IMG/VR virus record: IMGVR_UViG_3300009177_000028
Coordinates: 140,388 to 204,387 of that record
DNA: 64,000 bases
Strand: one strand, 5' to 3'
The notes below the pieces were generated by a model. It did not search any database, was not told the DNA's origin, and worked only from the letters and a program-made list of their open reading frames with translations. Of the stretch, positions 14,242-30,304 are shown piece by piece. The stretch's first letter is position 1; each line of letters starts with the position of its first letter. Both the position numbers and the translations under genes were made by a program.

Positions 14242-15396
14242 CTACCTTTCTTCCAAAACGCCGCTCATGGGCAGGCACAACCTGAAAACAGACCCAGGCC
14301 CATTAGGTGGGTCGTGAATCTCGATCCGCCCGCCAAGGCTCTTGGCGGCCTCTCCGGCGAGCCAAAGGCCAATCCCCATCCCGGCGTACTGGTCACCCGA
14401 GACGGCTCGCTCGAACCTCTGGAAAATGCGCTTGCGGTCTTTCTCAGGCACACCAATGCCATAGTCCCTCACATCGACCACAACCCAGCCGTCTACATGA
14501 GCTACATTGATATCAACAGGTTTTCCACAACCATATTTCATCGCGTTGTTGACCAGATTGGTCATAATCTGCTCAACCTTACTGACATCCCAAGTGCCGC
14601 GAATGCGCACTTTTGGCAAGTCAAGGCGAATCTCAATTCCCTGCCGTTTTGCCAAATCGTCATTCCTGAGCACAGTCTCTCGGATGACCTCACACACATC
14701 CGCATCTTGGAACGTCACTTGCGTGGGACTGGAGCGCCGTGAGACCTCTAGCAGGTCGCGTACAAGAGCGTTGAGCTTTTGTCCAGACCTCTCCACCGCT
14801 CCCAACCTCCTCAGAATCTCTGCCCTTGACAGCTCTTCCTTTGTCAATTTCTGCACCAAGTTCTGCGATGTCAAAAGAATACTAGAGATTGGCGTTTTCA
14901 ACTCATGAGCTGCCACTGAGATAAAGTCCTCTCTGATACTAATTGCCTGCTTGAGCTGCTCTCGATATTGAGATAGCTCAGTTATATCAACAAAGGAGAC
15001 GATTCCTTTGCCATCCTTCCCATGAGCTGGAGGGAGAAGCGCACCCTGACAGAGAAAGGTTCGCTTGTTGCCGGTCTCGGCGCAGGTCCAGTTAATCTCA
15101 TAGGCGGTAAAGGTCTCACCTCGGGCCACCCGTCTGGAGGGGTAGTCCCTTTCGGCAATTTGACTCCCATCGTTCTCGAAAAGCCCGCCCCGCCATCTTG
15201 CCTCATAGAGGCGAAAGGCTTCCGCATTCTCTTCGATACCGGCCGGCTCCACCTCTGGAACGACGTATTTGAGCGCGGTAGCGTTCGCATACAAGATCCG
15301 TGCCGTGTCCAGCTCGACTACAATAACTGCACTGGGAAGCGTATTCAGTAGCGCTTCCATCCACTTACGATGAGCCTGCTCTTCGAGTGTTATCAT
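14242..15396 (-). CDS. PAS-domain sensor histidine kinase
   Basis: PAS-like LNTLPSAVIVVE..ILYAN; H-box AHELKTP; N-box NLVNNAMKY; G1 DYGIG; F-box IFQRF; G2 GMGIGL; GC higher than flanks. Confidence 0.93.
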   Translation of the reverse strand: MITLEEQAHRKWMEALLNTLPSAVIVVELDTARILYANATALKYVVPEVEPAGIEENAEAFRLYEARWRGGLFENDGSQIAERDYPSRRVARGETFTAYEINWTCAETGNKRTFLCQGALLPPAHGKDGKGIVSFVDITELSQYREQLKQAISIREDFISVAAHELKTPISSILLTSQNLVQKLTKEELSRAEILRRLGAVERSGQKLNALVRDLLEVSRRSSPTQVTFQDADVCEVIRETVLRNDDLAKRQGIEIRLDLPKVRIRGTWDVSKVEQIMTNLVNNAMKYGCGKPVDINVAHVDGWVVVDVRDYGIGVPEKDRKRIFQRFERAVSGDQYAGMGIGLWLAGEAAKSLGGRIEIHDPPNGPGSVFRLCLPMSGVLEER

Positions 15397-15528
15397 GCGG
15401 TACCCCTCAGAGACTGTATGACCATGTCTCAGCAAGACGCAAGCACAATCGCCCAGCAAAAATCATGCCATGTTGCCTTTTGCCCCACCTGTGGTTAATT
15501 TTCCATCAGGAACTGGAATCTGAATTTT

Positions 15529-17415: not shown

Positions 17416-17778
17416 ATGCACCTCAAAACCATTAGCTGCCAACAACGCTGGAGATACTACTGCCCCTTCTGCGACCAAGATATCACCCCGCCCGATGGCT
17501 ACACCATCAGCAGCTTCATCCAATGCCAATTCTGCCCCGTCACCACCAACTTGATCGTCAATGGCTCCATTTCCAATCCCAATATCGCCTATATCCAATT
17601 CCAGCAAGACCAGTTCATGATCGAACTCAATCAGGATGACCAAACCACGGCCCTCTTTGCCGGTCCCGTCAATGCTAGGCTTTCCCAAATGCTCAAGCTA
17701 AGCTACCTGGTCCCCGTCAATCCAAACAATTTCCACAATTGGCTAAGCAAGCTGCTCAACCTAAAAGCTTTCTCTTAA
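17416..17778 (+). CDS. Zn-ribbon/FS-tail family member 25
   Basis: CPFC, CQFC; ends NPNNFHNWLSKLLNLKAFS-TAA. Confidence 0.85.
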   Translation: MHLKTISCQQRWRYYCPFCDQDITPPDGYTISSFIQCQFCPVTTNLIVNGSISNPNIAYIQFQQDQFMIELNQDDQTTALFAGPVNARLSQMLKLSYLVPVNPNNFHNWLSKLLNLKAFS

Positions 17779-18419
17779 GGCTCTCGATTATAAACCGAAT
17801 CCCCATAAATGCAATAATTCAAATTGCCCATCGGTAAATGCTGATAAACCGCCACTCGCCTCAATGCCTCATAATCCACGCACCTGGCCTCCGCCCAATT
17901 AAACATCGGCTGCATCAAATAGACATCATCATGCTGCGCTCCCAGCAAATGTCCCATCTCATGCAAAGCAATCCCCGTCACCCACTGATTGTACATGCGG
18001 TCGCGAATCATCCACATGCGGTTGCCGCCAATCTCATTGGCCCAAGCTAATGTATACGACTTGCCATGCTTGGTCTTGTCTAACTCCGTTACCATGGAAT
18101 TGCTGCTGTCCGTCTTCATGACCAACCAGCAATTGCCCAATAAACATTGCTTGATAATCTCCGGCTCCATATCAAATCGATAATTAACAACCCGCAACTT
18201 AACATACCCGTTCAAGGCGTAATTCCATTGAGTAATCGCATCGTCAATGGCAAGCTTATCCGCCTCTCCAAAGTTCTTATCCATGTAAATGGAAATAACC
18301 TTCAACGGAACGGGTGAATATCCACCCGCGTTAATATAATGAAACGGCTCCAGCCCTCGATGAGCAAAACATCCAACCGCTAAATACACTGCTAGTAAGA
18401 TTACTAAAAGTCGTTTCAT
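17775..18419 (-). CDS. secreted/lipoprotein metzincin Zn-metalloprotease (matrixin-like)
   Basis: signal/lipobox LAVYLAVGC; HEMGHLLGAQH (HExxHxxGxxH) plus Met-turn YLMQP. Confidence 0.88.
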   Translation of the reverse strand: MKRLLVILLAVYLAVGCFAHRGLEPFHYINAGGYSPVPLKVISIYMDKNFGEADKLAIDDAITQWNYALNGYVKLRVVNYRFDMEPEIIKQCLLGNCWLVMKTDSSNSMVTELDKTKHGKSYTLAWANEIGGNRMWMIRDRMYNQWVTGIALHEMGHLLGAQHDDVYLMQPMFNWAEARCVDYEALRRVAVYQHLPMGNLNYCIYGDSVYNREP

Positions 18420-18431
18420 AAACCATCTCCC

Positions 18432-19196
18432 TTACTTCTTAGATAAATCAGGAGCTGGCTCGTGATACTCTTTCACCATCTTCTTAACTGAATCCAAATG
18501 AACATAATAGTTCATAAATGGAACTCTAGTTAACCTGGAACAAATTCCAACTAGGTTTCCAGAGCTATCAAAAACTCCACCACCAGAATTGCCAAACCAA
18601 ATAGTTGCATTAACCTGAACTACCTTGCCAATTCCTGAACTCTCGTCTCCACGATAAGCAGAAACAGTTCCCTCAGCATGCGTGTAATACATTCCCTTAG
18701 GATGTCCGACAGAATAAACATGCTCTCCCAATGCTGGCATCTCGCTGGCAAATCCAACTGCCTCGTGCTCTGGTAATCCACCAACGTCTGCTTTAATCAA
18801 TGCCAAATCATGATCCGCATCAAAGGCAACTACCTTGGCCTTGTGAATAGCAGCAGGATCATCCATCACTTCCTTGACTTCCTTGCTAGTTACATAGTAA
18901 GTCTTCTCTCCAACTGGATCCGCTCCCTCTTCACGAGCTACACAGTGTCCTGCCGTAACAATCTCGTCTTGGCTAATCCAAACTCCTGTGCAGTGCGGAC
19001 GAATATCCACGCTGGCATTATCAATCTCCCCATTCTCATCCTTGTGAAGAGTGACCTTAAAATGAACTAAAGCTACCGTGCTCTCTCCAATATGCGCATG
19101 TAACGCATCTGGACTCTTCACCGGTGTCTTAAGTGATGAACCACAACCTACTAAGCCTAACACCATCGCTAGTGTAATTACCAATAAACGTTTCAT
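18432..19196 (-). CDS. trypsin-like (S1) serine protease lipoprotein
   Basis: lipobox LGLVGC; triad motifs VTAGHC, HDLALI, GNSGGG. Confidence 0.92.
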   Translation of the reverse strand: MKRLLVITLAMVLGLVGCGSSLKTPVKSPDALHAHIGESTVALVHFKVTLHKDENGEIDNASVDIRPHCTGVWISQDEIVTAGHCVAREEGADPVGEKTYYVTSKEVKEVMDDPAAIHKAKVVAFDADHDLALIKADVGGLPEHEAVGFASEMPALGEHVYSVGHPKGMYYTHAEGTVSAYRGDESSGIGKVVQVNATIWFGNSGGGVFDSSGNLVGICSRLTRVPFMNYYVHLDSVKKMVKEYHEPAPDLSKK

Positions 19197-19309
19197 GCAG
19201 TACGTCCTAAATTTTCAAAAGACTCCCCAATCGAAGCCCAATTAAGAAAAATACCAGATTATCCCCAATTGTTTCCAATATTTCACAAAACTAAGACAGA
19301 TGTAATTTA

Positions 19310-19852
19310 TTAGATTATAGATTGAATCACTTGGTGTAAACAACCCACTGCCTTGGTTCCCCTAATAATAATCCCGGCATGGTAATCATAATCCCCTTGG
19401 TCATTGTAATCATGCCAGCATTCCAATAACTCCCCTGCCCCCATTACCCTGTACATCCCAGCCACGGATGGATCCATTAAATAAACTAATCCATTCTTAA
19501 TTCCTACCAAAACTACATAGTGCCCATCATCCCAAACCTCAGACATCTTAGTCTCTGCCGTATAACTACCCCACGCCTGAATACTCAAGATAACCGTATA
19601 TCCCTCAGCCGTTAATCCCTGTAACTCCTCCAGAGTCATATTAGATTTACTGTAGGCAGTTAATCCATAGTTCCTAGCCCCTGCTATCAATCCTTCCCCT
19701 GAGGTTCCTTCATCGGTGGTCCCCAGTAAATCGTATAGCTCTGGCTCTCGGCCATCCCAAACGCCCCAATAGTATAAACAACTGGCTAAACTAGCTGCCC
19801 CACAACTGTAGTCATAGGCTTGGCGGACTATAGGTAAATAGATTAAGCTCAT
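19310..19852 (-). CDS. C39-like cysteine peptidase (stand-alone)
   Basis: RQAYDYSCGAA (Q-x5-C), GHYVVL, LMDP. Confidence 0.88.
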   Translation of the reverse strand: MSLIYLPIVRQAYDYSCGAASLASCLYYWGVWDGREPELYDLLGTTDEGTSGEGLIAGARNYGLTAYSKSNMTLEELQGLTAEGYTVILSIQAWGSYTAETKMSEVWDDGHYVVLVGIKNGLVYLMDPSVAGMYRVMGAGELLECWHDYNDQGDYDYHAGIIIRGTKAVGCLHQVIQSII

Positions 19853-20230
19853 TTAGATTACTTCCTTTGAGTGGTTGGGGCGCGGTTAGCGCCCTCTCTT
19901 ATGCCAGTCTATCCCGTTAGGTATGGGGTGATTATATCTGTATTGCTACATAGGGTCACATATGGCAACGTATGGTCATATATGGTCATTAATTAGATCT
20001 TTTATAATGGTATAAGATGCTTATTACTTTTAATAAGTGGGAAATGGTGGGATGGGGTGGCATTTTATGGGAAAGTAATATATATTTTATCGTATTGGTC
20101 GTTTTGGTAATGTATATGTTAGTTGGAGATGGCCCACAGGCTGTGTGATTTGGTGTTTGACCCCTGTTTGGGAGGCGCCATCCCACCCCGCACGACAGTC
20201 TCCCACCTTTTTCGGGCGGCTCCAATGTAG

Positions 20231-20265
20231 GTGGTATGAGTTATGCAATATGCAATCATGCCAAC
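20231..20265 (+). promoter_or_regulatory. repeated sigma54-type element, copy 1
   Basis: TGG-TATGAGTTAT-GC (GG-N10-GC) then AATATGCAATCATGCCAAC. Confidence 0.65.
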
Positions 20266-20380
20266 TACATCGTAATCAATGTAGGATAATCTCTTTTATT
20301 TATCTATACTGTGTGATGAATACTTTTTATTATTATCATTCATCACATGTAGTATATTTTTATTTATTAGAGGAATGTGG

Positions 20381-20415
20381 TTGGTATGCCGTTTGCAATA
20401 TGCAATCATGCCAAC
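20381..20415 (+). promoter_or_regulatory. repeated sigma54-type element, copy 2
   Basis: TTGG-TATGCCGTTT-GC; 26-bp perfect direct repeat with copy 1 (20244-20269 / 20394-20419). Confidence 0.65.
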
Positions 20416-20458
20416 TACAGGTAGGATAAGCAGCAGAAAGCCCCTGAAACCTGGGCGG

Positions 20459-20493
20459 TTGGCATGAAACCTGCAATTAGCAAGCGTGCCAAC
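20459..20493 (+). promoter_or_regulatory. repeated sigma54-type element, copy 3
   Basis: TTGG-CATGAAACCT-GC then AATTAGCAAGCGTGCCAAC. Confidence 0.7.
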
Positions 20494-20560
20494 TACCTGG
20501 GCGGGGCGAGTAGGAGGTCCACCTACCCCAAGCGGGCGCCTCTCTCGTGTGTCGAGCATG

Positions 20561-20644
20561 CCGCGCAACGGCCGATCGTGGCGCGCTAGTGGCGCGGTAG
20601 CGCAAGGATCGGCCGCTAGTGGCGCGGTACCGCGCAACGGCCGA
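20561..20644. repeat. GC-rich A-B-B-A direct repeat block
   Basis: CCGCGCAACGGCCGA at 20561 and 20630; CGCTAGTGGCGCGGTA at 20584 and 20614. Confidence 0.75.
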
Positions 20645-20915
20645 AAGCGCACTAGAAGAGCGCCTAGCGCGACCCTAGCCTATGACACCAAGATCATACC
20701 CCGGATGTAGTCAAAGGTCATGAGCTGTCGTTCAATGTTGCTCGAAAAAGGCTAATGGTTTCGTAGGGTAGACCTACATTATCCGCCAAAACTTTCGGAA
20801 TTCGTCATGGTAGTTTCTTTTCCTACATCGCAATTAGTTGCTGAATTCCGACCAACCAGGACACAAAGATCATTGTGGGATAAGATGCTACACCAATGAT
20901 ATCATATAGTTACAG

Positions 20916-20933
20916 TTGGCACCGACCCTGCAA
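20916..20933 (+). promoter_or_regulatory. sigma54-type promoter
   Basis: TTGGCACCGACCCTGCAA, GG-N10-GC, upstream of boxA and the long plus-strand gene run. Confidence 0.6.
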
Positions 20934-21032
20934 TGACCCCTAGACGCAACGGGAACGGATGAGAGCAGGGGTCACGCGGGCGGATCGCCCGCGCAGCCTG
21001 ACAGCGCACATGGTGCGCGCTGTCGCTCGATG

Positions 21033-21044
21033 TGGTCTTTGACA
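21033..21044 (+). promoter_or_regulatory. rrn-type boxA antitermination element
   Basis: TGGTCTTTGACA, 10/12 to E. coli boxA TGCTCTTTAACA. Confidence 0.5.
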
Positions 21045-21577
21045 ATCTAAACGTCTCACACGGGCGCCTCATGTGCGCCTACAGCGCGCGCCTAGCGCGT
21101 GTGCCTCCTACCTACGGTAAGGGACAGTGTGCGATAGCGGCGACCATATAGGTCCGCTCCTACCGCGTCCCACAATCACCGAGTAGCGCACACAACCGAA
21201 GCCACTGTGGGTTACATGCGGAAGATGTGTGGGCCAGGTGACCCGTCCTACATTCACTCCACACGGGAGACGATGTAGGCTACCCTCACCTAGTGTACGA
21301 ATCCCGAGGAGGGATAAACCGTAGGTAGGGCAATGTCCTGCTAGAGCCGACAATGTAGGCCGCGGTGAGGCGGTATGAGTCCGCAGCGTACGAATCAAGA
21401 GACTAAACGACTATGTGGGAGGGACGCCTAGAGTGTCCTTCCCCCGTAGCGTAAAGCCTACAAGGTAAGTAACTCTCTCCAAGTCTACGGTATTGGAGTA
21501 GGAGAGAACACCTTGTGAGCTTTACGCTGCGATCATCGCAGAGTGTCCCACAACAGCAGACAACAGGAGCCAACATC

Positions 21578-22150
21578 ATGAGCCAGACCACCAGCAACGA
21601 CAGCGCCGTCAAGTCGACCACCATCTCCTCCGATGTGGAGGAGCGTCTCACCGCCACCTTCAAGACCCTTCACCATCTCGTCTCCACCCACATGGTGAGT
21701 GCGGGTGCGAAGCTCACCTTCATGTCGGAGTTCGAGAAGTGTGGGATGGAGGACTACAAGGAGGTCGCGCATGCGGCACGGAAGCTGCTCGGCGCCAAGC
21801 GTCAGGAAAAGTGGGAGAACCGCATCAAGGGGATCCGTGCGGGGATCCAGGGTGTGGTCGACACCTACATGAACCGCAAACGTGCGGCCAAGGCGCAGTT
21901 CGACGCACTCCCGGAGGAGTTGCGCGCAGAAGGTGTGACCTTCAACCCCAACGTCTCCATCCCGGTGAAGGAGCTTGTGGGATGCTTCCCGCAGGGTGCG
22001 ACCCAGGAGCAGATCCTCCGAGACCTGAAGGATCTCTCCTACAACGTCATCCAGAATGCGGAAAAGGCGTACCTCATCCGCGTTGCCTTCGTTGCCGACA
22101 AGGTGGCAGACGAGGCGCCCAAGTCGGAGAAGACCGCCAAGGCGGCCTGA
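21578..22150 (+). CDS. hypothetical protein (first gene of the GC-rich run)
   Basis: AGGAG SD; strongly GC3-biased codons; ends KTAKAA. Confidence 0.85.
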   Translation: MSQTTSNDSAVKSTTISSDVEERLTATFKTLHHLVSTHMVSAGAKLTFMSEFEKCGMEDYKEVAHAARKLLGAKRQEKWENRIKGIRAGIQGVVDTYMNRKRAAKAQFDALPEELRAEGVTFNPNVSIPVKELVGCFPQGATQEQILRDLKDLSYNVIQNAEKAYLIRVAFVADKVADEAPKSEKTAKAA

Positions 22151-22173
22151 GCGCGCAGCGTTCCGCTGAGTCT

Positions 22174-22227
22174 CCTACATCCTGCTCCCAACTGCTCCCA
22201 TGTGGGGTGGTTGGGGGCAGTCGTAGG
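22174..22227 (+). ncRNA. intergenic hairpin family copy H1
   Basis: CCTAC-ATC-CTGCTCCCAAC...GTTGGGGGCAG-TC-GTAGG. Confidence 0.7.
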
Positions 22228-22252
22228 CGAGTCAACCACCAAGGAGGTTCAT

Positions 22253-22474
22253 GTGTTCCATACTCAGCCCAAGACCTACAAGAAGGTCTCTCTCCTCCAC
22301 AAGAACTACTTCGACCTACTCTGCGGCTCCAATGGCTACAGTAGGGAAGAGTACGACATCTGCGAGAAGGAAGACAATCTGGGGTTTCCTGTCTACACCG
22401 TGGACGTGTGGTCGCAAAGGTGCGACGACATGATGCAACGTGTGTTCAGCGAAGCCAACGGCTACAAGCGCTGA
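22253..22474 (+). CDS. hypothetical protein
   Basis: AAGGAGG SD then GTG 22253. Confidence 0.75.
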   Translation: MFHTQPKTYKKVSLLHKNYFDLLCGSNGYSREEYDICEKEDNLGFPVYTVDVWSQRCDDMMQRVFSEANGYKR

Positions 22475-22478
22475 TCTA

Positions 22479-22521
22479 CCTACACCATGCTCCCGAGGGT
22501 TACTTCGGGGGCATGAGTAGG
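22479..22521 (+). ncRNA. intergenic hairpin family copy H2
   Basis: CCTAC-ACC-ATGCTCCCGA...TCGGGGGCAT-GA-GTAGG (compensatory ATGC/GCAT). Confidence 0.72.
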
Positions 22522-22533
22522 AGGACCAGACAC

Positions 22534-22932
22534 ATGTACAAGTACGACGGACACTCCTTCAACATGTGCGAGGAGTGGTCGCAATGCCCACAACATCGAA
22601 CGGAGACCCACATGAAGGACAAGCTCGCTCAAGCGCCCGACCAGGTGCGACAGTTCGTACACGCTCTCATCTCCAACGCCAAAGAGGTGGAAGGGTGGGA
22701 AGTGTGCGACATGGAGGATGGCAAGTGCTTCGCTGACACCATAGCCCACATCGAGCACAAGGAAGACGGAAGGTGGGTGGTGTGCGACAACTACGAACGG
22801 TTCTTCTCTCTCATCTACACCTACACGGTGGCAGGCGAGTGGACCGTGCGCCGCATGTATGGCGAAGGTGGGGAGATGCCCTACAGCTTCGCCAAGTGTA
22901 TGGCGGATGCCTCCATCATGTTCACTGGCTGA
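22534..22932 (+). CDS. hypothetical protein
   Basis: AGGAGG SD; fills the space between H2 and H3. Confidence 0.75.
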   Translation: MYKYDGHSFNMCEEWSQCPQHRTETHMKDKLAQAPDQVRQFVHALISNAKEVEGWEVCDMEDGKCFADTIAHIEHKEDGRWVVCDNYERFFSLIYTYTVAGEWTVRRMYGEGGEMPYSFAKCMADASIMFTG

Positions 22933-22936
22933 TCCA

Positions 22937-22978
22937 CCTACGTCATGCCCTCATGTGTGTACATGGGGGCATTGGTAG
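22937..22978 (+). ncRNA. intergenic hairpin family copy H3
   Basis: CCTAC-GTC-ATGCCCTCATG...CATGGGGGCAT-TG-GTAG. Confidence 0.7.
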
Positions 22979-23019
22979 TGGGATTAGGCTCACTAACACC
23001 AAACAAGGGAGAATGTAAG

Positions 23020-23199
23020 ATGATCAAGTTCATTGTGGTTGTTCTGGCGTGCATCGGGGCATTCTTCGGTCTGGCGATTCTGTCGGGTCATGTCCCCCAG
23101 ATCTCCCACACCGCCTTCAACATCAGCACCTTTCAGGTCACGTGGTTGATGCTGGGCGTGTGTGCGACCGGGTTCGTCTCCTACAAGGTGTGCAAGTAA
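23020..23199 (+). CDS. small two-TM membrane protein, paralogue of 38068-38253
   Basis: MIKF...H.P...AF....WL..G.C...F..YK..K shared. Confidence 0.75.
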   Translation: MIKFIVVVLACIGAFFGLAILSGHVPQISHTAFNISTFQVTWLMLGVCATGFVSYKVCK

Positions 23200-23253
23200 A
23201 GGGTGCTGTAAGCGCCTAACGTACACATAACGTTACTCCAATCGAGGAAAACA

Positions 23254-23300
23254 GCGGCATATAGGCGCCTAGGTGGGTTCGACTCCCACATGCCGCCCTA
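23254..23300 (+). ncRNA. tRNA-like minihelix (acceptor stem plus T-arm)
   Basis: GCGGCAT/ATGCCGC 7-bp stem, TAGG-CG-CCTA mini-hairpin, GTGGG-TTCGACT-CCCAC T-arm. Confidence 0.5.
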
Positions 23301-23324
23301 AGTCATACATCAGCGGAGGATGTC

Positions 23325-23531
23325 ATGGTCAAGGTTACCAAGTGCCCCAATGTGGGTGATGCGGTCAAGATCGTCAAAGGCAAGAGGTCGGGTGATGTAG
23401 GCATCATCAAGCGATGTGCCTCGGTGTGGGGAGAGGACCGACTCAAGTGGTCGTCCTTCCTACTCGACATCAATGGTGAGGAAGTGTGGGTGCGTACGCA
23501 CCATGTGGAGAAACTGGAGAACGCGGCCTGA
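23325..23531 (+). CDS. KOW/SH3-like small protein
   Basis: VGDAVKIVKGKRSGDVGII KOW-like motif; ends ENAA. Confidence 0.6.
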   Translation: MVKVTKCPNVGDAVKIVKGKRSGDVGIIKRCASVWGEDRLKWSSFLLDINGEEVWVRTHHVEKLENAA

Positions 23532-23533
23532 CA

Positions 23534-23574
23534 CCCACACCCTGCTCCTAAGTAATCCTTGGGGGCAGAAGTGG
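23534..23574 (+). ncRNA. intergenic hairpin family copy H4
   Basis: CCCAC-ACC-CTGCTCC...GGGGGCAG-AA-GTGG (compensatory CCAC/GTGG). Confidence 0.7.
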
Positions 23575-23608
23575 TTGGCACGCTTGCATATAGCACAACG
23601 TATGCCAA
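23574..23608 (-). promoter_or_regulatory. repeated sigma54-type element, copy 4 (antisense)
   Basis: minus strand TTGG-CATACGTTGT-GC then TATATGCAAGCGTGCCAAC. Confidence 0.65.
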
Positions 23609-23620
23609 AGGAGGATTCCC

Positions 23621-24145
23621 ATGAAGATCAAGAGCCAGCGCACCACGACCTACACCGAGACCTACTCCCTCACCTTCGAGTACATCGGCTCCAATGGGAG
23701 CGGGTGTGCGTTCGACTGCGACAAGGAGGGAAAGGTCGACCTGACCAAGCTGCACCCGTGTGCGATTCTGACCTACACCGAAGCCAAGTTCGGACAGGTC
23801 ACCCGACGTGAGAACGTGCAGTACCGTGTGGGTGCAGATGGGGAATACGAGCCCATCCCCGGCACGGGTGAGATGGTCACCCGAGAGGTGAGCAAGGGTG
23901 AGGTCATCACCTACATCAACCGCCAGATCGTTCCTGCGGTGGGAGAGTGTGATTGTTGTGGGAGGGATGTCCACCTCTACGGTTTCACCAACACATGTGA
24001 GTGTGGGGCCGACTACAACATGTCGGGTCAGATGCTCGCTCCTCGTGAACAGTGGGGAGAGGAGACAGGTGAGACAGCCGCCGACATCCTCTCCTTCGAC
24101 TCCTACGATCGGGAGCCCATGGGCACCGATGAAGGATGGTTCTGA
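23621..24145 (+). CDS. hypothetical Cys-rich protein
   Basis: GGAGG SD; CDCC..C.C cluster. Confidence 0.8.
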   Translation: MKIKSQRTTTYTETYSLTFEYIGSNGSGCAFDCDKEGKVDLTKLHPCAILTYTEAKFGQVTRRENVQYRVGADGEYEPIPGTGEMVTREVSKGEVITYINRQIVPAVGECDCCGRDVHLYGFTNTCECGADYNMSGQMLAPREQWGEETGETAADILSFDSYDREPMGTDEGWF

Positions 24146-24161
24146 CAAAGTAGGAGTGCCG

Positions 24162-24203
24162 CCTACACCCTGCCTTCATGTGCAAGCATGAGGGTAGAAG
24201 TAG
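24162..24203 (+). ncRNA. intergenic hairpin family copy H5
   Basis: CCTAC-ACC-CTGCCTTCATG...CATGAGGGTAG-AA-GTAG (two G-U pairs on plus strand). Confidence 0.72.
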
Positions 24204-24237
24204 TTGGCATGCTTGCATGTAGCAGATTGTATGCCAA
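24203..24237 (-). promoter_or_regulatory. repeated sigma54-type element, copy 5 (antisense)
   Basis: minus strand TTGG-CATACAATCT-GC then TACATGCAAGCATGCCAAC. Confidence 0.65.
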
Positions 24238-24269
24238 TCGACCCCAAACACCCAAGGTAGGAGAGTGTC

Positions 24270-24830
24270 ATGAACTTCACGACCAAACCGGATACGTTCG
24301 TTCTCGTGGTGGCGGCCCTGTCGGATAAGCTGGTCCAGAAGGAGAACGAGTGTGTGGAGCTGCGAGACCACATCGCCTCCGACCATGCCAGCATGGACGA
24401 CATGCAGCGCACCATCACCGACCTGCGGGTCCAGTGTGAGCGACTGCAAGACAAGGCGGATGATGTGGACTACTTCCGCACTCGCTATCAGGACATGTCC
24501 CACAAGCTGGAGAACTACGAACACCTCCGCTCACAGAATGCCGAACTGTGGGAGCAGGTGCGAGTCCTGAAGATGGAGAACCACAAGCTCCGCTACGGTG
24601 GGCAGACTCCCGAGGAGACGGCCAACAACTACATGCTCTCCCAGGGGAGGCAGGTGTGGGAGCGTGGCAACAAGATTCAGTGCATCAAGGAGGTGCGAGA
24701 GGTGAGTGGATGGGGGCTGAAGGAAACCAAGGATTGGTGCGAAGCCTACATCGCCCGCCTGGATAACGAAAAGGAGGAGAGCGGCCCCGGTACCAAGCGC
24801 TCCTCCGGCAACGTAGCCAAAACTGGCTGA
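24270..24830 (+). CDS. coiled-coil protein with ribosomal bL12 (L7/L12) C-terminal-domain-like motif
   Basis: heptad-rich region then NKIQCIKEVREVSGWGLKETKDWCE. Confidence 0.65.
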   Translation: MNFTTKPDTFVLVVAALSDKLVQKENECVELRDHIASDHASMDDMQRTITDLRVQCERLQDKADDVDYFRTRYQDMSHKLENYEHLRSQNAELWEQVRVLKMENHKLRYGGQTPEETANNYMLSQGRQVWERGNKIQCIKEVREVSGWGLKETKDWCEAYIARLDNEKEESGPGTKRSSGNVAKTG

Positions 24831-24834
24831 CGCA

Positions 24835-24876
24835 CCTACACCCTGCCTCTATGTGTGAACATGGGGGCAGGAGTAG
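24835..24876 (+). ncRNA. intergenic hairpin family copy H6
   Basis: CCTAC-ACC-CTGCCTCTATG...CATGGGGGCAG-GA-GTAG. Confidence 0.72.
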
Positions 24877-24911
24877 CTGATTCAGACACAACACATGAAA
24901 GGAGAGAGGTC

Positions 24912-25037
24912 ATGAAGGTTCACAAGTCGCAGCGTGTGTTCCAAGAGGAGAAGAAGTATCCGGGTGTGGGTGCCCTCATCTGCGTCGGCTCTGGTCTCCT
25001 CTTTTGGGGGAGCTTGGCCTACCTCTTCGTTCACTGA
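24912..25037 (+). CDS. small membrane protein
   Basis: GAGG SD; C-terminal hydrophobic helix. Confidence 0.55.
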   Translation: MKVHKSQRVFQEEKKYPGVGALICVGSGLLFWGSLAYLFVH

Positions 25038-25057
25038 GGGAGTAGTGGGTCCAAGGG

Positions 25058-25092
25058 GTTGGCATGCTTGCATAGTGCAACATCCATGCCAC
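25058..25092 (-). promoter_or_regulatory. repeated sigma54-type element, copy 6 (antisense)
   Basis: minus strand GTGG-CATGGATGTT-GCA, canonical TTGCA -12 box. Confidence 0.7.
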
Positions 25093-25237
25093 AGCAGGCA
25101 TGTCGCCCCTACACCTACCTCAGAATACCTTCACCTATAATTCTTGTTGCACCTAACTTGAAACGTGCTAACTTATAATCTCGCCATTCTCGCAAGCCAA
25201 GGCCAAAACCTACATCGGCCCCATTAGGAGATAAGTC

Positions 25238-26131
25238 ATGAACGTGTATGAGATTGTCACCGAACGGATCATTGCAGCCCTGGAAAAGGGTGTCGTACCT
25301 TGGCGCATGCCCTGGCGTACCCAAGGTGGGAGCGGTCTCCCCAAGAACCTACAGAGTGGGAAGGAGTACCGAGGTGTCAACATCTTCCTACTGGGTGCGC
25401 AGGGGTACGCCTCTCCCTGGTGGGTTACCTACAAGCAGTGTACGGCCCGAGGTGGGCAGGTGCGCAAAGGTGAGAAGGGCACCCCGGTCATCTTCTGGAA
25501 GGTAGGAGATCATAAGACCAAGGTGGGCAAGAGTGGGAAACCGGAGAAGATGTTTATCCTCCGGTACTACACTGTCTTCAATGTCGCCCAGTGTGATGGG
25601 CTGGACTACCCCAAGGAGGCGGTGGTGGAAGCTCCCACCTTCGACCCCATCGAGCAATGCGAGAAGATCGTTCTCGCCTACAAGACCCTACCCAAGATTG
25701 AGCACGGAGGTGGGCGAGCCTGCTACTCCCCCTCCTTCGACAAGGTGATGATGCCGGAAAAGGAGAGCTTTGGTAAGAGGGAGGAATACTACTCCACACT
25801 CTTCCACGAGCTTACCCACAGCACCGGACATGAGAGCAGGTTGAACCGGGATGGGATCATGAATCCCATTCGGTTTGCCTCACATGACTACAGCTTTGAG
25901 GAGCTGGTAGCAGAATGTGGGGCGGCCTTTCTCTGCGCACATGCGGGTATCTTGGATACCACGCTGGACAACTCGGCCGCCTACATCTCCCACTGGGTGA
26001 GCAAGCTGAAGAGTGAGCCAAGGTGGATTGTGGAAGCCTCAAGTAAGGCAGCTAAGGCGGCTGACTACATCATGGGAGACCTGGTCAAAAAGGAGTCAGA
26101 GTCGGAGGAGTCAAGCGAGGAAGCCGCTTGA
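25238..26131 (+). CDS. ardC: ArdC-family ssDNA-binding antirestriction protein with zincin-like domain
   Basis: GVVPWRMPW, YRGVN, TYKQ..GGQVRKGEKG, YTVFNVAQ, TLFHELTHSTGH..RLNR, YSFEELVAE. Confidence 0.93.
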   Translation: MNVYEIVTERIIAALEKGVVPWRMPWRTQGGSGLPKNLQSGKEYRGVNIFLLGAQGYASPWWVTYKQCTARGGQVRKGEKGTPVIFWKVGDHKTKVGKSGKPEKMFILRYYTVFNVAQCDGLDYPKEAVVEAPTFDPIEQCEKIVLAYKTLPKIEHGGGRACYSPSFDKVMMPEKESFGKREEYYSTLFHELTHSTGHESRLNRDGIMNPIRFASHDYSFEELVAECGAAFLCAHAGILDTTLDNSAAYISHWVSKLKSEPRWIVEASSKAAKAADYIMGDLVKKESESEESSEEAA

Positions 26132-26218
26132 ACCGACATGTCAGGGACTGGGCTGGCCTACTCGGCTGGCTCAGTCTATTATCCTACATCCTCACACACA
26201 AGCCCTGAAAGGACGACC

Positions 26219-26638
26219 ATGAACGACAAGAGACCCTGGAATGAGGGAGGGGAGGAGAAGCCATATAGTGTCTCACTGTGGATACAGGATCCCTCCGACA
26301 TGAGTGACAATGACACATGTATGGCCGGGGAAGACTTCGCCACCGAAAAGGAAGCGCGAATGTGTCTGGCCGACATGAACGCACACTTCAATGACAGGTT
26401 CTACAAGGACGTACCTTATGTCCTGTTGGACGGCCCGAACGACCTACACGAGGTGACAGTGCGCACCCAAGCCCTCAAGCGGATGCAACGTGAGAGGGAG
26501 TGCGAGGACAGGGCGGCAAGGTCGGAGATGGCCATGCAAGCTGGGATGGGTATGGGCATTCATGCCTACAACGACATGATGGGATACGACTCTGAAGAGT
26601 ACGACCCTGACCTACACGGATACCTGCACGAAGACTGA
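26219..26638 (+). CDS. hypothetical protein
   Basis: AAAGGA SD; acidic. Confidence 0.75.
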   Translation: MNDKRPWNEGGEEKPYSVSLWIQDPSDMSDNDTCMAGEDFATEKEARMCLADMNAHFNDRFYKDVPYVLLDGPNDLHEVTVRTQALKRMQRERECEDRAARSEMAMQAGMGMGIHAYNDMMGYDSEEYDPDLHGYLHED

Positions 26639-26667
26639 GCAACCACAACAACCCGAAAGGTACGACC

Positions 26668-26886
26668 ATGAGCGACAACAACGGCAACAAGAGCGAAGGT
26701 AGCATCAAGACCGACAAGCGGAAGCAGTCTCTCTACTTTCCGGAGAGCATGCTCCAAGAGATCAAGGAGGAGGCGGCTCGGCTGGATCGTAGTCTGTCGT
26801 GGGTGGTTCAGCGTGCATGGAAGCTGGCACGCACCGAAGTCAAGAATCTGCCCAGCGTCTCCGACATCGAGACGGAGGACGAGTAA
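26668..26886 (+). CDS. MXAN_4361/MXAN_4362-family (TIGR04563-like) ribbon-helix-helix small protein
   Basis: DKRKQSLYFPESMLQEIKEEAARLDRSLSWVVQRAWKLAR matches the myxobacterial family as recalled. Confidence 0.88.
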   Translation: MSDNNGNKSEGSIKTDKRKQSLYFPESMLQEIKEEAARLDRSLSWVVQRAWKLARTEVKNLPSVSDIETEDE

Positions 26887-26894
26887 TCGTACCA

Positions 26895-26936
26895 CCTACA
26901 CCCTGCCCATTAGTGAGAGCTAGTGGGCAGGAGTAG
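26895..26936 (+). ncRNA. intergenic hairpin family copy H7
   Basis: CCTAC-ACC-CTGCCCATTAG...CTAGTGGGCAG-GA-GTAG. Confidence 0.72.
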
Positions 26937-26970
26937 TTGGCATGCTTGCATGTTGCACATCTCATGCCAC
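26936..26970 (-). promoter_or_regulatory. repeated sigma54-type element, copy 7 (antisense)
   Basis: minus strand GTGG-CATGAGATGT-GC then AACATGCAAGCATGCCAAC. Confidence 0.65.
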
Positions 26971-27004
26971 GGGGCGCCAGGCCCACACTCACCCACAATT
27001 CAGC

Positions 27005-27022
27005 GTGGCACATGACTTGCAT
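27005..27022 (+). promoter_or_regulatory. sigma54-type promoter (sense)
   Basis: GTGGCACATGACTTGCAT, canonical TGGCAC-N5-TTGC. Confidence 0.65.
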
Positions 27023-27079
27023 GTAATTGCATGGTCAATCAAAAGTGCTACAATTGATCAAAAGGAAAAGGAGGTTATC

Positions 27080-27313
27080 ATGTTTGGTATGAACAAGGCG
27101 CACATTGACACCGTCTATCAGCGAGAGGACGACATGTCCGACCTGATGCGCCGATGTCGGATGGCCCTCGACATGGGAGCCTCCAAGGAAGAAGTTCACG
27201 ACATCTGCATCCAAGCGGGTCAAAGTGAGGAACAAGCCTACTTGACCTACATCGCAGCCAAGCTGCTCACACGTGACGAAGCGTGCGAGACTGGCGCCCG
27301 AAAGGTGGCCTGA
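27080..27313 (+). CDS. hypothetical protein
   Basis: AAGGAGG SD, ATG 27080. Confidence 0.75.
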   Translation: MFGMNKAHIDTVYQREDDMSDLMRRCRMALDMGASKEEVHDICIQAGQSEEQAYLTYIAAKLLTRDEACETGARKVA

Positions 27314-27314
27314 C

Positions 27315-27791
27315 ATGTACTCCAAAGAGATCAAAGGTAGTTGGTTCGGCGTGACCATTCCCGAATGGTTGCGAGCCTTCGACTGTCGGTCCAGCGAGGA
27401 CGATATCGCACCTCGTACTCCCTGGGGCTCCTATCTCTGGTCAAGTGAGAGAGCTGCCGTGGACCTGGGCCTGCGTGCGGAAGGTGTCTACAACGACACT
27501 ACGCCCGTGGGCTGCTCCACCTACATCGATGCTCGTACGGCTCCTGAGTCGGAGTTGAAACGACAGGTGGAGAATATGGTGGCAGAGGCGACCAGACTTC
27601 GGGAGGAGTACCTAGAAGGGAAGAAGTTTCCCGATACTGAGGGACAAGGTGGGAGTTGTCTCTACATGCCGGTGGCTGTCTGCCTGAGTAACTTCGGGTG
27701 GTCGGTCCTGGCAGATCGGACCCAAGGAATCGTTCGCCGGTTTGGCTACAATGCCACACCCAAACGTACCAAGAAAGGAAGTGTGCGATGA
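27315..27791 (+). CDS. hypothetical protein
   Basis: abuts previous stop; ATGA overlap to next. Confidence 0.75.
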   Translation: MYSKEIKGSWFGVTIPEWLRAFDCRSSEDDIAPRTPWGSYLWSSERAAVDLGLRAEGVYNDTTPVGCSTYIDARTAPESELKRQVENMVAEATRLREEYLEGKKFPDTEGQGGSCLYMPVAVCLSNFGWSVLADRTQGIVRRFGYNATPKRTKKGSVR

Positions 27792-28390
27792 GCAAGTACA
27801 AGGGTGACGGGGCGTTGGAGCAGATCAACCCCGAGCGACTTACCTTGGGGTGTGTGGTGCGCATGCCCTACGGAAGTGGGGAAGTGCCTGCCTTTGGTGA
27901 CAGTGTCATCATCGGTATCCACGTCTCCTACTCTTCCAAGCGAACGAGTAAGGAGCGGTGCGATAAGCGCCACTACGAGACTCTCGCACAAGCTCTTACC
28001 CAAGCGCAGGATGGCGACTTCGTGGTGGTGAGTCTGGCTCGCCCCTACGTGTACGCCAACAACCCCTTCGTCTCTACACCGGGCTGGCTGGTCGGGTGCG
28101 AGAAGTACGAGGTGATGGGAGACCGCATCATCGACACCCACAAGGTGGTGGTTCAGAGCACGGGTGAGTATGCCACCTACAACATCAAACCTGCGCTCCA
28201 TTCGTGGGAGGTGGTGGTTGGCAACATCGGGAGCGTCTATCGCGACTTGTCGGAGAGCGCGGCCCGAGCCACCTACAAGGTGTACGTAGAGAACAGCAAG
28301 TGGCAGGGTGGACGTGCCAGTGGGGAAAGCGTCACTCTCTTCTGCGATGGTGAGATTGTGGAGGAGCATGTGGGGACGGTGGAAGGATGA
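27788..28390 (+). CDS. hypothetical protein
   Basis: coupled ORF, coding-like GC3. Confidence 0.75.
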   Translation: MSKYKGDGALEQINPERLTLGCVVRMPYGSGEVPAFGDSVIIGIHVSYSSKRTSKERCDKRHYETLAQALTQAQDGDFVVVSLARPYVYANNPFVSTPGWLVGCEKYEVMGDRIIDTHKVVVQSTGEYATYNIKPALHSWEVVVGNIGSVYRDLSESAARATYKVYVENSKWQGGRASGESVTLFCDGEIVEEHVGTVEG

Positions 28391-28629
28391 TTACATACCT
28401 CGACCCCAAACAAGTCATTGCCAAGCGCCAGACCACTCCTCCCCACAACCGGAGTCGCAGTGGGTATGGCAACAAGCTGCCTACATCCTGGGAGCTTCAA
28501 CTACAGGACAAGCGGTGGAGGCGGGTGTACGTGATTCAGTGGAGCAACGCTGGATCCGCCTACATCCTGGTCAAAGGTGAGAAGTTGTTCCTGGGTTCCT
28601 ACGAACCCTCCTATGAAGGGAAGGTGTGA
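28387..28629 (+). CDS. conserved phage-type hypothetical protein
   Basis: GYGNKLPT...RRVY..WSNAGSAY motif recalled from phage hypotheticals. Confidence 0.7.
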   Translation: MITYLDPKQVIAKRQTTPPHNRSRSGYGNKLPTSWELQLQDKRWRRVYVIQWSNAGSAYILVKGEKLFLGSYEPSYEGKV

Positions 28630-28630
28630 G

Positions 28631-29011
28631 ATGGGCTGGGATAAAGCATGCGGAGATGAGCAGTGTGAGGGATGTGACGCCACCCTGGAGGAAGGGGAGG
28701 ACATGTATGTCCAAGGGGACAGCGTGTACTGCGAAGGGTGCAACGAGGACCGCTTGGATGACGAAGCGGGTGAATGGGATGAATTGGACTACATGGACCG
28801 TGAAGGTGACTATCCCATCGATGGGGTAGGATTCGCGGACCCTGGTGGTCACTCGGCCCTACGTGCAGCTACACCCAACAACCCAAGGGACTGCGATTGT
28901 CCTACCTGTGGGGCGGAGGACGTTCTGACCCGCATCGACCGTCAACGTGGGTATCAGTGCGACAGGTGCGCTGATCGGGCGGAAGGTCGGAGCGGGTACG
29001 GAGACTACTGA
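28631..29011 (+). CDS. Zn-finger acidic protein
   Basis: several CxxC pairs (CEGC, CPTC, CDRC). Confidence 0.75.
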   Translation: MGWDKACGDEQCEGCDATLEEGEDMYVQGDSVYCEGCNEDRLDDEAGEWDELDYMDREGDYPIDGVGFADPGGHSALRAATPNNPRDCDCPTCGAEDVLTRIDRQRGYQCDRCADRAEGRSGYGDY

Positions 29012-29012
29012 C

Positions 29013-29330
29013 ATGAAGACACTGGTGCTGGTGGAGGATGATCTGATGCTTGCTAGCACCTTCATTCGGGTGTTGGGCAAAACTCACAACATCCTCCACT
29101 TCCTGACAGTCAAGGATGCCAGAGCACATCTGGCCTTGAATCCCACACCTGATGTCCTCCTCCTGGATCGTCAGGTGGGGTATGACAATGGGTGGGCGTT
29201 GCGGGAGGAGGTGGGTACGGGTGTCAGGGTGGTCCTGATGACGGGCGCTCCTCCCCAAGGCAATTCACTTACCTTCTTCCACAAGGGAGTAGATAACATA
29301 CAAAAACTTATCAGTATGGTAGAAGGCTAA
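29013..29330 (+). CDS. stand-alone receiver domain protein
   Basis: LVLVEDD, VLLLD, VLMTG, FHKG. Confidence 0.8.
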   Translation: MKTLVLVEDDLMLASTFIRVLGKTHNILHFLTVKDARAHLALNPTPDVLLLDRQVGYDNGWALREEVGTGVRVVLMTGAPPQGNSLTFFHKGVDNIQKLISMVEG

Positions 29331-29334
29331 ACTT

Positions 29335-29377
29335 CCTACACCCTGCCTATTAGAATTATCTAGTGGGCAGAAGTAGG
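29335..29377 (+). ncRNA. intergenic hairpin family copy H8
   Basis: CCTAC-ACC-CTGCCTATTAG...CTAGTGGGCAG-AA-GTAGG. Confidence 0.72.
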
Positions 29378-29421
29378 GGGATTCATCCTGAATCTTCTGA
29401 GACAAGGAAAGAGGAGAGCGC

Positions 29422-29976: not shown

Positions 29977-29984
29977 AGATACTT

Positions 29985-30058
29985 TCTACATCCTGCCGAT
30001 TATTCGTCTGGCTGATAAACTCGGTTTATTCGTCTGGCAGATAGTCGGCAGTAGTAGG
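29985..30058 (+). ncRNA. intergenic hairpin family copy H9 (extended)
   Basis: TCTAC-ATC-CTGCCGATTAT...ATAGTCGGCAG-TA-GTAGG; loop holds TATTCGTCTGGC twice (30001, 30027). Confidence 0.68.
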
Positions 30059-30304
30059 AGGTGTGTCATGTAATCGGCTAACTAACTTGTTTACCCGATA
30101 GTGTGGGAAACCCTGAGAGTGTGTCGCGACATTCAAGACATGGTGTATTGAATGGGCGCATGTGAGAATCCACGATACCCCAAGAGCTTTTGACGACAAT
30201 GTAGTTCTAAGTCTTCTATTACTCGCCTATAACCGAAACCTGCCGAAAGGGTGGGGAGTAGGTTATGGGCGCACATAGAGGGATTAGAAAGGAAAGGCAA
30301 GACC

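Follow-up and report, generated by a model that had tools for sequence, protein, structure and literature searches.

Variable, mostly orphan small genes of T4-type phages are grouped in hyperplastic regions between conserved core blocks, in which promoter-early stem-loop (PeSL) cassettes recur between the ORFs and gene content turns over much faster than in the core (PMC2839356, PMC4122927). In phage SPO1, host-takeover genes sit in the terminal repeats (Stewart et al. 1998, cited in PMC6873191). The pre-early region of T5 is similar. In SPO1 and T5, this block of small genes, headed and interspersed by clustered promoters for host polymerase with the housekeeping sigma factor, is set apart from the structural and replication genes, is associated with defence evasion and host shut-off, lies in a terminal repeat of about 10-13 kb, and is expressed first. 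Bacterial sigma54 (RpoN) promoters carry GG and GC dinucleotides 10 nt apart (PMC2831329) and need an ATP-driven activator (PMC3844500); they are rarely reported in phages. Differences in synonymous codon usage between early and late phage genes, and phage tRNA sets, have also been described (PMC5683454, PMC12482277).

In the present study, we examined a 64,000-nt stretch (the window), which is the last 64 kb of the 204,387-bp IMG/VR contig IMGVR_UViG_3300009177_000028 (G0), from a soil phage lineage of roughly 490 kb. An earlier note, made from the sequence alone, had pointed to a boundary of composition and strand with 1.7 kb lacking credible genes, and had proposed that it is the physical left end or the first-injected region of the genome. 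The observation itself was confirmed, except for the boxA. The interpretation was only partly supported: the interval heads a co-oriented block of small genes with a composition and codon usage unlike the rest of the phage and carries clustered sigma54-type sites, but a physical end was not shown, and early timing and host-like codon usage remain inferences.

As in the T4-type regions, variable orphan genes are grouped next to a conserved core, and stem-loop plus promoter-like motifs recur between the ORFs. However, the promoter-like half here is sigma54-type and not a sigma70 early promoter, it points against the genes in the window, and there is one large arm with a single sharp head instead of several interspersed regions. 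The arm also differs from the core by 15-25 GC points, with a gradient; no such shift was found for T4-type regions in the papers that we examined. The gene sizes and promoter-like sites of the arm fit a host-takeover or pre-early region of the SPO1 or T5 type. Compared with SPO1 and T5, however, the arm is longer (44-60 kb), and its promoter-like sites are of the sigma54 type. Compared with bacterial sigma54 promoters, the sites lie in a phage in which we found neither sigma54 nor an activator, they are clustered in tandem and as face-to-face palindromes, and no upstream activator site was identified. As in these codon-usage differences, a gene class presumably expressed by host machinery differs in synonymous codon usage from the structural genes, in a phage lineage with a large tRNA set, but the size of the shift (GC3 0.34 versus 0.7-0.8), its sharp start at a non-coding element, its smooth decay with distance, and the accompanying shift of the non-coding DNA are different. 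A preprint on terminal inverted repeats of a Burkholderia jumbo phage describes a different architecture.

Anatomy of the gene-free interval

The first 160 kb of the contig are about 40% GC and the last 44 kb are 50-57%. GC steps from about 40% to 56-63% within about 200 bp near window positions 20,400-20,460. At 100-200 nt resolution, the step lies at about 20,400-20,500, with 27% GC at 20,300-20,399 and 71% at 20,500-20,599. The genes on the left flank are on the minus strand: a metallopeptidase (17775-18419), a trypsin-like protein (18432-19196), and a C39-family peptidase (19310-19852; Pfam PF03412, E 6.6e-13). The C39 gene is the last conserved gene of the low-GC body, is transcribed away from the gap, and has 54-59% identical homologues directly next to the GC step in the relatives G1 and G2 (see below). 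All credible genes on the right are on the plus strand. The first, at 21569-22150, encodes 193 amino acid residues of no known family, with a GC3 of 0.82; a search of viral contigs found no relatives of it.

No ORF in the gap (19853-21568) has the coding signature of the arm, high GC3 with low GC2. No ORF in the gap matched Pfam or PHROGs (best E 0.03), no arm protein of G1 matched the gap, and no Rfam family was found. Thus, neither pseudogene relics in the GC-rich half nor known RNA families were detected.

The AT-rich tracts that the earlier note had described were confirmed. The AT-rich half (19853-20450, 40% GC) contains non-coding blocks conserved in G1 and G2, as shown by blastn and a three-genome alignment: a TATAAT-containing block at about 20001-20025 and a GC-rich block at about 20160-20212. 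A conserved micro-ORF was considered for the second block, but the 33-codon frame at 20129-20230 has no start codon in G2.

Three 46-nt copies of a sigma54-type element lie in tandem on the plus strand, as the note had described. Element 1 (20224-20269, core 20232-20247) is embedded in a 46-nt hairpin-capable palindrome (DNA fold z -4.2) and aligns with an element of G1; strain SNPs at 20237-20239 spare the GG and GC. Element 2 (20374-20419, core 20382-20397) aligns with palindromic elements of G1 and G2. Element 3 (20452-20497, core 20460-20475, TGGCATG-N4-CTGCAAT) lies at the GC step and is comparable to the E. coli astC and norV promoters listed in PMC2831329. A fourth site (20917-20932, plus strand, TGGCACC-N4-CTGCA) does not belong to the 46-nt family.

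The GC-rich block of direct and inverted repeats, also noted before, lies at 20561-20644; its fold is no better than shuffles (z -0.75), and it is a strain-variable patch. GC-rich inverted repeats at 20967-21099 (fold z -3.0) include the boxA-like 12-mer at 21034-21045. This is a 2-mismatch match to the E. coli boxA, one of 27 such matches in the contig, and is absent from the same place in G1 and G2; we judged the boxA of the earlier note to be a chance-level match and rejected Nus-dependent antitermination. A long stem-loop at 21445-21531 (plus strand; 22-nt arms, 86% complementary; -24.3 kcal/mol, z -6.0, 0 of 200 shuffles as good) lies 37 nt upstream of the first start codon, is not followed by a T-run, and is likely a 5' leader structure.

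The pattern TGGYAY-N6-TGCA occurs 10 times in the window against 0.48 expected, about 20 times more frequently than by chance, and 0 of 100 shuffles reached 10. The four sites in the gap and 8 of 8 extended copies have the GG and GC 10 nt apart in the TGGCAC and TTGC context. The extended form, TGGCACG-N4-TTGCAAT, is nearly identical to proven E. coli promoters such as astC, rtcB, norV, and glnK (PMC2831329). The orientation is sense for the four gap sites and for two tandem sites at 54752-54795 (plus strand; second site at 54780), 39-67 nt upstream of the primase-like gene (54819). In contrast, five of the eight extended elements in the window lie between plus-strand genes but on the minus strand, antisense to them: at 23570-23607, in the gap before the gene at 23621; at 24199-24236; at 25054-25091, in the gap before the ArdC gene; at 26932-26969; and at 31124-31161, in the 394-nt gap before the gene at 31376. 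A hairpin and such an inverted element lie side by side at 23535-23607, 24162-24236 (hairpin CCTACACCCTGCC, loop, GGGTAGAAGTAG), and 26895-26969 (fold z -3.1), the last being followed by a plus-strand site at 27006-27021. This arrangement only partly resembles a PeSL cassette: the promoter-like half is sigma54-type and inverted.

Conservation of the junction and turnover of the arm

A chimeric assembly, which had been named beforehand as a condition that would refute the boundary, was rejected, as independent public assemblies cross the junction and four to five syntenic relatives share the layout. The comparison covered strains more than 98% identical and relatives at about 57% identity. The stretch was found in 20 public runs from 14 studies, none of them an RNA run. 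A 3,877-nt Logan contig of a groundwater run spans 19650-23500, and a soil contig spans 19577-19908. Four related huge-phage contigs (G1, G2, G4, and partly G3) show the same layout at the syntenic place: a low-GC body ending in a protease cluster, a cluster of sigma54-type sites, a sharp GC step, and then a slow decay. In G1 (a 480.8-kb record rated complete) and G2, the step comes right after the C39 homologue. In G4, GC rises from 26-31% to 45-55% next to 20 sigma54-type sites, and the G3 record starts inside such a cluster. G1 has 18 and G2 has 14 matches to TGGYAY-N5-TTGCW, against 0 for the reversed-pattern control; most lie at the boundary, and many copies in the relatives are face-to-face palindromes. 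In G1 and G2, the first arm gene starts about 70 nt after such an element, in the sense orientation.

The high-GC arm (21569-64000, plus strand) consists of small, mostly orphan genes and includes ArdC (25238-26131), a RecT-like protein (39926-41308), a primase-like protein (54819-56435), and Ku (57316-58071). Only 2-3 of 85 window-arm ORFs have homologues in G1 or G2, whereas 119-122 of 157 body ORFs (about 76%) are conserved at about 57% identity. The compositional shift is mostly at third codon positions, with a GC3 of 0.68-0.82 in the arm and 0.34 in the body, but intergenic DNA of the arm is also GC-rich (50-56%). GC falls with distance in the window arm (rho -0.73), and the three correlations obtained were -0.73, -0.81, and -0.93. 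Between G1 and G2, body orthologues are 73% identical with GC3 of 0.37/0.29, and arm orthologues are 58-61% identical with GC3 of 0.64/0.67 near the head and 0.56/0.54 further out.

No RNA polymerase beta-prime, T7-type RNA polymerase, RpoN, or bEBP domain was detected in G0 or in the complete G1, and PF00158 and PF04552 were also absent from G2; only one sigma70-family factor was found. As the phage has no detectable RNA polymerase, use of the host polymerase is plausible. G1 carries 57 tRNAs, which fits the idea that the body uses phage tRNAs while the arm uses host-like codons.

Interpretation and alternatives

We consider, with moderate confidence, that the interval is the conserved, non-coding regulatory head of a hyperplastic, GC-rich arm in a soil myovirus lineage. 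The conserved low-GC body ends on its left with the leftward protease genes, and on its right begins a 44-60 kb array of small rightward genes, some with anti-restriction, DNA-end-binding, or recombination functions. In this view, host core polymerase with host sigma54, switched on by a host or unrecognised activator, would start rightward transcription here, and transcripts would pass through a structured leader into an accessory, probably early, host-takeover arm. The GC3-rich codon usage has been maintained over long evolutionary time, and so reflects a standing position-dependent pressure and not a recent import. That pressure is most simply translation on the host's own tRNA pool before or without the large phage tRNA set, and/or a local mutational or repair bias; codon selection alone does not explain the GC-rich intergenic DNA. 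Our analysis directly established the anatomy, its conservation, the enrichment of the motif, the turnover of gene content, and the persistence of GC3, whereas the use of sigma54, the early timing, and the cause of the gradient are inferred. The lack of an encoded activator is awkward for immediate-early genes. Five of the eight extended elements in the window point antisense to the genes and many copies in the relatives are face-to-face palindromes, so the elements may serve another role, such as operators, structural or recombination sites, or antisense control. In addition, G1 and G2 carry a different motif before nearly every arm gene (CTCCCATTCAC, 52 of 63 and 57 of 62 copies in the arm), which is absent from the arm of the window. 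This suggests another promoter class, perhaps for the phage's own sigma factor, and so not necessarily early expression.

The proposal of a physical terminus, in which the boundary is the left end of the packaged DNA or the pac start of headful packaging and the arm is a long terminal redundancy injected first, appears unlikely on present evidence. Word depth steps up 2.2-2.4-fold across the boundary in two independent samples (from 7.6 to 18.2 in X2, and from 3.3-5.1 to 8.3 in X4), as a twice-present terminal repeat would give, and several assemblies of this lineage as well as the G1 parent contig break near the far end of the arm (about 64.4 kb). Every assembly examined runs through the interval, although a collapsed terminal repeat would still assemble in this way. 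However, these are contig depths that track GC in the pieces compared, so that GC bias is an equal explanation, and the two samples place the step at different points (right of 19,650 in X2 and right of 20,049 in X4). No loose ends, joints, or pile-ups were seen in the contigs. The relatives' maps are circular or permuted with different break points, and a 44-60 kb terminal repeat would be unusually long. It is also unlikely, though compatible with promoter function, that the elements are instead protein-binding or recombination sites that mediate shuffling of arm genes as the T4 PeSLs do, or operators for a phage regulator, with an incidental likeness to sigma54 promoters. Their palindromic form, their position in intergenic gaps of a hypervariable array next to a second conserved hairpin family, the five antisense copies, and local rearrangements between the G1 and G2 arms fit this view. 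On the other hand, the GG-N10-GC spacing is exact in every copy while the spacer sequence is free, and non-palindromic copies sit 39-70 nt upstream of genes in the right orientation. In 30 unrelated IMG/VR contigs, the unconstrained base after TGGCAY is G in 23 of 33 cases and a purine in 32 of 33, as in the sigma54 consensus. A 35-bp operator would be unusually long. No tyrosine recombinase was found in G0, G1, or G2, and palindromes follow only some genes within the first 11 kb, which also argues against an integron-like cassette array.

A recently imported, ameliorating island from a GC-rich mobile element or host, with the gap as its insertion scar, is very unlikely. ArdC, Ku, RecT-like, and primase-like genes are typical of plasmids and temperate phages, gene content is largely not shared with G1 or G2, and the GC-rich non-coding DNA at 20,451-21,568 could be decayed genes. 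However, the same step occurs at the same syntenic place in four to five lineages diverged to 25-75% protein identity, and synonymous sites should have equilibrated long before the G1 and G2 arm orthologues became only about 60% identical. No match to any plasmid-like or phage record was found for 19,000-23,000. A prophage-host junction is close to refuted, as is a chimera, despite the sharp change of composition and gene size and the 'provirus' labels of G1, G2, and G3 in IMG/VR. No PF00589 integrase was found in G0, G1, or G2, the arm holds only small orphans and phage or mobile-element genes and no housekeeping genes, and the G1 and G2 arms are syntenic with each other. The G2 parent contig (490,849 bp) runs from the arm straight into the phage genes that open the G1 parent contig.

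A more far-reaching possibility, which we put forward only tentatively, is that a clade of soil megaphages keeps a standing compositional sawtooth: from a fixed non-coding element studded with sigma54 promoters, often face-to-face pairs, GC3 would jump by 30-45 points and then decay smoothly over 10-70 kb, whatever genes occupy the arm. Position along the arm, and not gene ancestry, would then set base composition, either through a codon-usage gradient from the host tRNA pool to dependence on phage tRNAs, or through GC-biased repair at a pac-proximal, terminally redundant, recombination-prone end, which would also explain the doubled depth. The palindromic double sigma54 element, found in 30 unrelated viral contigs, would be a compact bidirectional phage promoter type, of which we found no description in the papers searched.

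Our finding shows that a striking GC step within a viral contig can be genuine biology, not a chimera or a prophage edge. Public pipelines appear to have trimmed three relatives as proviruses at or near this feature; thus, huge-phage genomes of this kind may be systematically cut or discarded. A conserved cluster of sigma54-type promoter sequences in lineages in which no activator was found raises the question of how a virus switches on a promoter class that is silent without an ATP-driven host activator. A gradient that persists while the genes under it are replaced offers a natural system to separate translational selection from mutational or repair bias, and the arm, a concentrated reservoir of small orphan genes next to known anti-restriction and DNA-end-binding genes, is a good place to look for new counter-defence functions.

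Additional observations

A histidine-kinase island at window 14.2-15.5 kb is 53% GC. Three routes did not identify a host: the histidine kinase has only a 24% identical relative, the ArdC atlas clusters are taxonomically mixed, and phage isolates are all less than 31% identical, with the nearest annotated hit in an Acidobacteria jumbo phage. ARAGORN found no tRNA just beyond the window end. A replication origin at the boundary was rejected, as the cumulative GC skew of the complete G1 has no extreme there, and the local skew flip only follows gene direction. The oligomer ATGTAGG occurs 35 times in the arm against 7.2 expected, and never in the left 20 kb. This is not evidence for a Chi site, as G1 and G2 lack the enrichment, and the copies are either arms of the intergenic hairpins or in-frame NCC-TAC-ATC codons.

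The boundary and its conservation in related phages

The contig of 204,387 bp (G0 hereafter), rated by CheckV as about 48% complete, comes from a rhizosphere metagenome (Ga0105248_10000031), and the window is its last 64 kb. The first 160 kb are about 40% GC and densely coding, with large genes that include a tail sheath, baseplate J, a PhuZ-like tubulin, a DnaB helicase, ribonucleotide reductase, PhoH, and tail-fibre-like giants; this is a huge myovirus. In contrast, the last 44 kb are 50-57% GC, with small genes averaging 140 aa. Genes were called from ORFs and codon-position GC, and translation table 11 was used throughout.

The compositional and strand boundary described in the earlier note was confirmed. 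The GC step lies at window ~20,400-20,500. To the left, genes for a C39 peptidase, a trypsin-like protease, and a metallopeptidase are read leftward, and to the right every ORF with a coding signature is read rightward, beginning at 21569. Between them, the region 19,853-21,568 contains no ORF with a coding signature, no family match, no relic of the relatives' genes, and no Rfam match. This gap consists of an AT-rich half (40% GC) and a GC-rich half (56% GC). It contains three copies of a 46-nt element, the core of each of which fits the sigma54 -24/-12 pattern, and a fourth site lies at 20917. The pattern occurs 10 times in the window against 0.48 expected. The repeat block at 20561-20644 and the inverted repeats at 20967-21099 are real, and a long stem-loop at 21445-21531 folds far better than shuffled sequences (z -6.0). 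The boxA claimed in the earlier note, however, is a 2-mismatch match of a kind that occurs 27 times in the contig, and it is not conserved in the relatives.

The junction is not an artefact. Twenty public runs from 14 studies of soil, rhizosphere, and groundwater contain the stretch nearly unchanged. In a groundwater run, a single Logan contig covers 19650-23500, and the assembly graph continues leftward through a two-variant bubble; a soil run has a contig over 19577-19908. The copies are nearly identical (about 0.5-1% divergence; window 18000-23500 in runs X2 and X4), so this is a widespread lineage. A 19-nt deletion at 22147, near the end of the first arm gene, is present in one groundwater strain.

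A search with the C39 peptidase led to two relatives in IMG/VR, G1 (480,838 bp, rated complete) and G2 (209,766 bp). The body of G0 is collinear with both, and 119-122 of 157 ORFs are conserved, at about 57% identity, up to the C39 gene. In both relatives, GC jumps from about 40% to 58-69% within about 200 bp just past that gene, and then falls slowly back over about 60-70 kb. A scan for the palindromic form of the element found two more relatives. In G4 (353,765 bp; body proteins 55-76% identical), 20 sigma54-type sites lie in 4 kb next to the metallopeptidase homologue, and GC steps from 26-31% to 45-55% and decays within about 10 kb. The record of the more distant G3 (332,270 bp) begins inside such a cluster at the GC step.

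Gene content and base composition of the arm

Only 2-3 of the 85 ORFs of the window's arm have homologues in G1 or G2, and the reverse search gave nine weak hits, all at window 32 kb or beyond. G1 and G2, which are closer to each other, have largely syntenic arms with some rearrangements. The recognisable arm genes are those for ArdC, Ku, a RecT-like protein, and a primase-like protein. No housekeeping genes were found in the arm, and ten proximal genes gave nothing, or only coiled-coil noise.

The shift in composition is mainly synonymous. GC1/GC2/GC3 is 0.47/0.39/0.34 in the body and about 0.53-0.58/0.44-0.46/0.65-0.68 in the proximal arm, and individual genes reach GC3 0.82. However, intergenic DNA of the arm is also 50-56% GC. 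G1-G2 orthologues in the body are 73% identical with GC3 0.37/0.29; those in the arm are 58-61% identical, yet keep GC3 0.64/0.67 near the head and 0.56/0.54 further out.

The complete relative G1 carries 57 tRNAs (9-175 kb), including one TAA-reading and two TAG-reading suppressor-like tRNAs, as well as a tmRNA (tag ANDNAFAMAA). As the long ORFs of G0 read normally under table 11, no recoding was assumed.

Sigma54-type elements and comparison with known systems

Across the contig, the extended element (TGGCAT, six free bases, TGCW, then a conserved ATGCAAGCATGCCAACYAC tail) has eight copies, all in the first 11 kb to the right of the step. Three are rightward, in the gap, and five are leftward, each in an intergenic gap of the rightward gene array. 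In three of those gaps, the element follows a second conserved hairpin (stem CCTACACCCTGCC/GGGCAGGAGTAGG) and precedes the next ribosome-binding site. The hairpins form a family of six in window 23535-31754, with loops of 14-18 nt and no T-run, and follow the stop codons of arm genes; their stems account for much of the strong ATGTAGG/CCTACAT excess in the arm.

In G1, G2, and G4, many copies are symmetrical (TGGCAY-N5-TTGCA-N3-TGCAA-N5-RTGCCA), that is, two sigma54-type sites facing each other, and G4 also has four in tandem. Exact matches to that palindrome occur in 30 IMG/VR contigs of very different GC (33-59%), mostly in ORF-free gaps and often between divergent ORFs. The base after TGGCAY, which the pattern left free, is G in 23 of 33 cases and a purine in 32 of 33, a further feature of the published consensus. 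The palindrome may be a compact bidirectional promoter type that is widespread in phages. The sites in the gap read like proven E. coli promoters (PMC2831329), strain differences in element 1 spare the GG and the GC, and in G1 and G2 the first arm gene starts about 70 nt after such an element. We consider the identification of the elements sound at the level of sequence, whereas their function is inferred.

Some findings speak against a simple role as sigma54 early promoters. The sigma54 holoenzyme needs an enhancer-binding ATPase (PMC3844500), and neither that domain nor RpoN was found in G0, in G2, or in complete G1. No RNA polymerase domains were found either, although the control for the T7-type model was silent, and there is one sigma70-family factor. 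The phage therefore appears to depend on host polymerase, and the activator would have to be the host's, or of a new kind. A histidine kinase gene (PAS, HisKA, HATPase) at window 14242-15470 forms a 53% GC island in the 40% GC body; it is absent from G1 and G2, and a sigma54-type site lies just upstream of it. As pure speculation, a phage kinase acting on a host NtrC-type activator would be one way to switch on the sigma54 sites. A plain promoter role does not explain the five antisense copies and the palindromes. In addition, G1 (420-478 kb) and G2 (145-204 kb) carry another motif, CTCCCATTCAC, 20-45 nt before nearly every arm start codon. All copies are on the coding strand, and 52 of 63 and 57 of 62 copies, respectively, lie in the arm. 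This is likely a second, phage-specific promoter or leader signal; the window's arm lacks it.

The closest systems are the hyperplastic regions of T4-type phages, with their stem-loop plus early-promoter cassettes (PMC2839356; PMC4122927); also close are the host-takeover or pre-early modules of SPO1 and T5. Early and late phage genes are known to differ in codon usage (PMC5683454). What differs here is the sigma54-type and palindromic promoter sequences, the single sharp head conserved across a clade, and a GC step of 15-25 points with a smooth, long-maintained decay that does not depend on which genes occupy the arm. Our full-text searches found no description of such a pattern, or of palindromic sigma54 pairs in phages, although they covered a single library and do not prove novelty.

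Alternative readings of the boundary

IMG/VR labels G1-G3 as 'provirus', but the boundary is not a prophage edge. The parent contig of G2 (490,849 bp) runs from the arm, beyond the end of the record, straight on into genes for an RNA ligase, DUF2786, CoaE, and UDG, and those same genes open the parent contig of G1 (498,445 bp), just upstream of the first base of the record. The map is therefore circular or permuted, at about 490-498 kb. No integrase domain occurs in G0, G1, or G2, and the absence of housekeeping genes from the arm also speaks against a host junction. The 'provirus' labels look like trimming artefacts, and huge phages with such arms may be cut short in public catalogues. Simple import of the arm followed by amelioration is opposed mainly by the G1-G2 arm orthologues: at their divergence synonymous sites are saturated, so the high GC3 and its gradient are maintained and not inherited from a recent donor.

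A physical end of the genome at this place, one of the possibilities raised in the earlier note, was not shown. All assemblies pass through the gap, but a collapsed terminal repeat would do so too, so continuity proves nothing either way. Contig word depth rises 2.2-2.4-fold across the boundary in two samples, which fits a repeat present twice, or a pac-proximal redundancy; however, depth also tracks GC in the contig pieces examined. No ends, joints, or loose ends were seen, but contigs cannot show them. GC skew gives no sign of an origin. We consider a terminus or terminal repeat unlikely but not excluded, and it is compatible with our main reading of the gap as the regulatory head of the arm. 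At least five independent assemblies of this lineage end 0.6-1.6 kb beyond the gene at 62865-63293 (compare window 63,300-64,000), near the far end of the arm, which suggests a repeat, a variable spot, or an end there. The G1 parent contig ends 3.7 kb past a tRNA-Glu at the far end of its arm, whereas the G2 parent contig passes that point without a break. At the other end of G0, the first ORF (contig bases 9-992) is 95% identical to a G1 protein at 256,250, while its neighbours are 50-70% identical, and the G2 parent contig also starts near this point; it may be a mobile or repeated gene that breaks assemblies.
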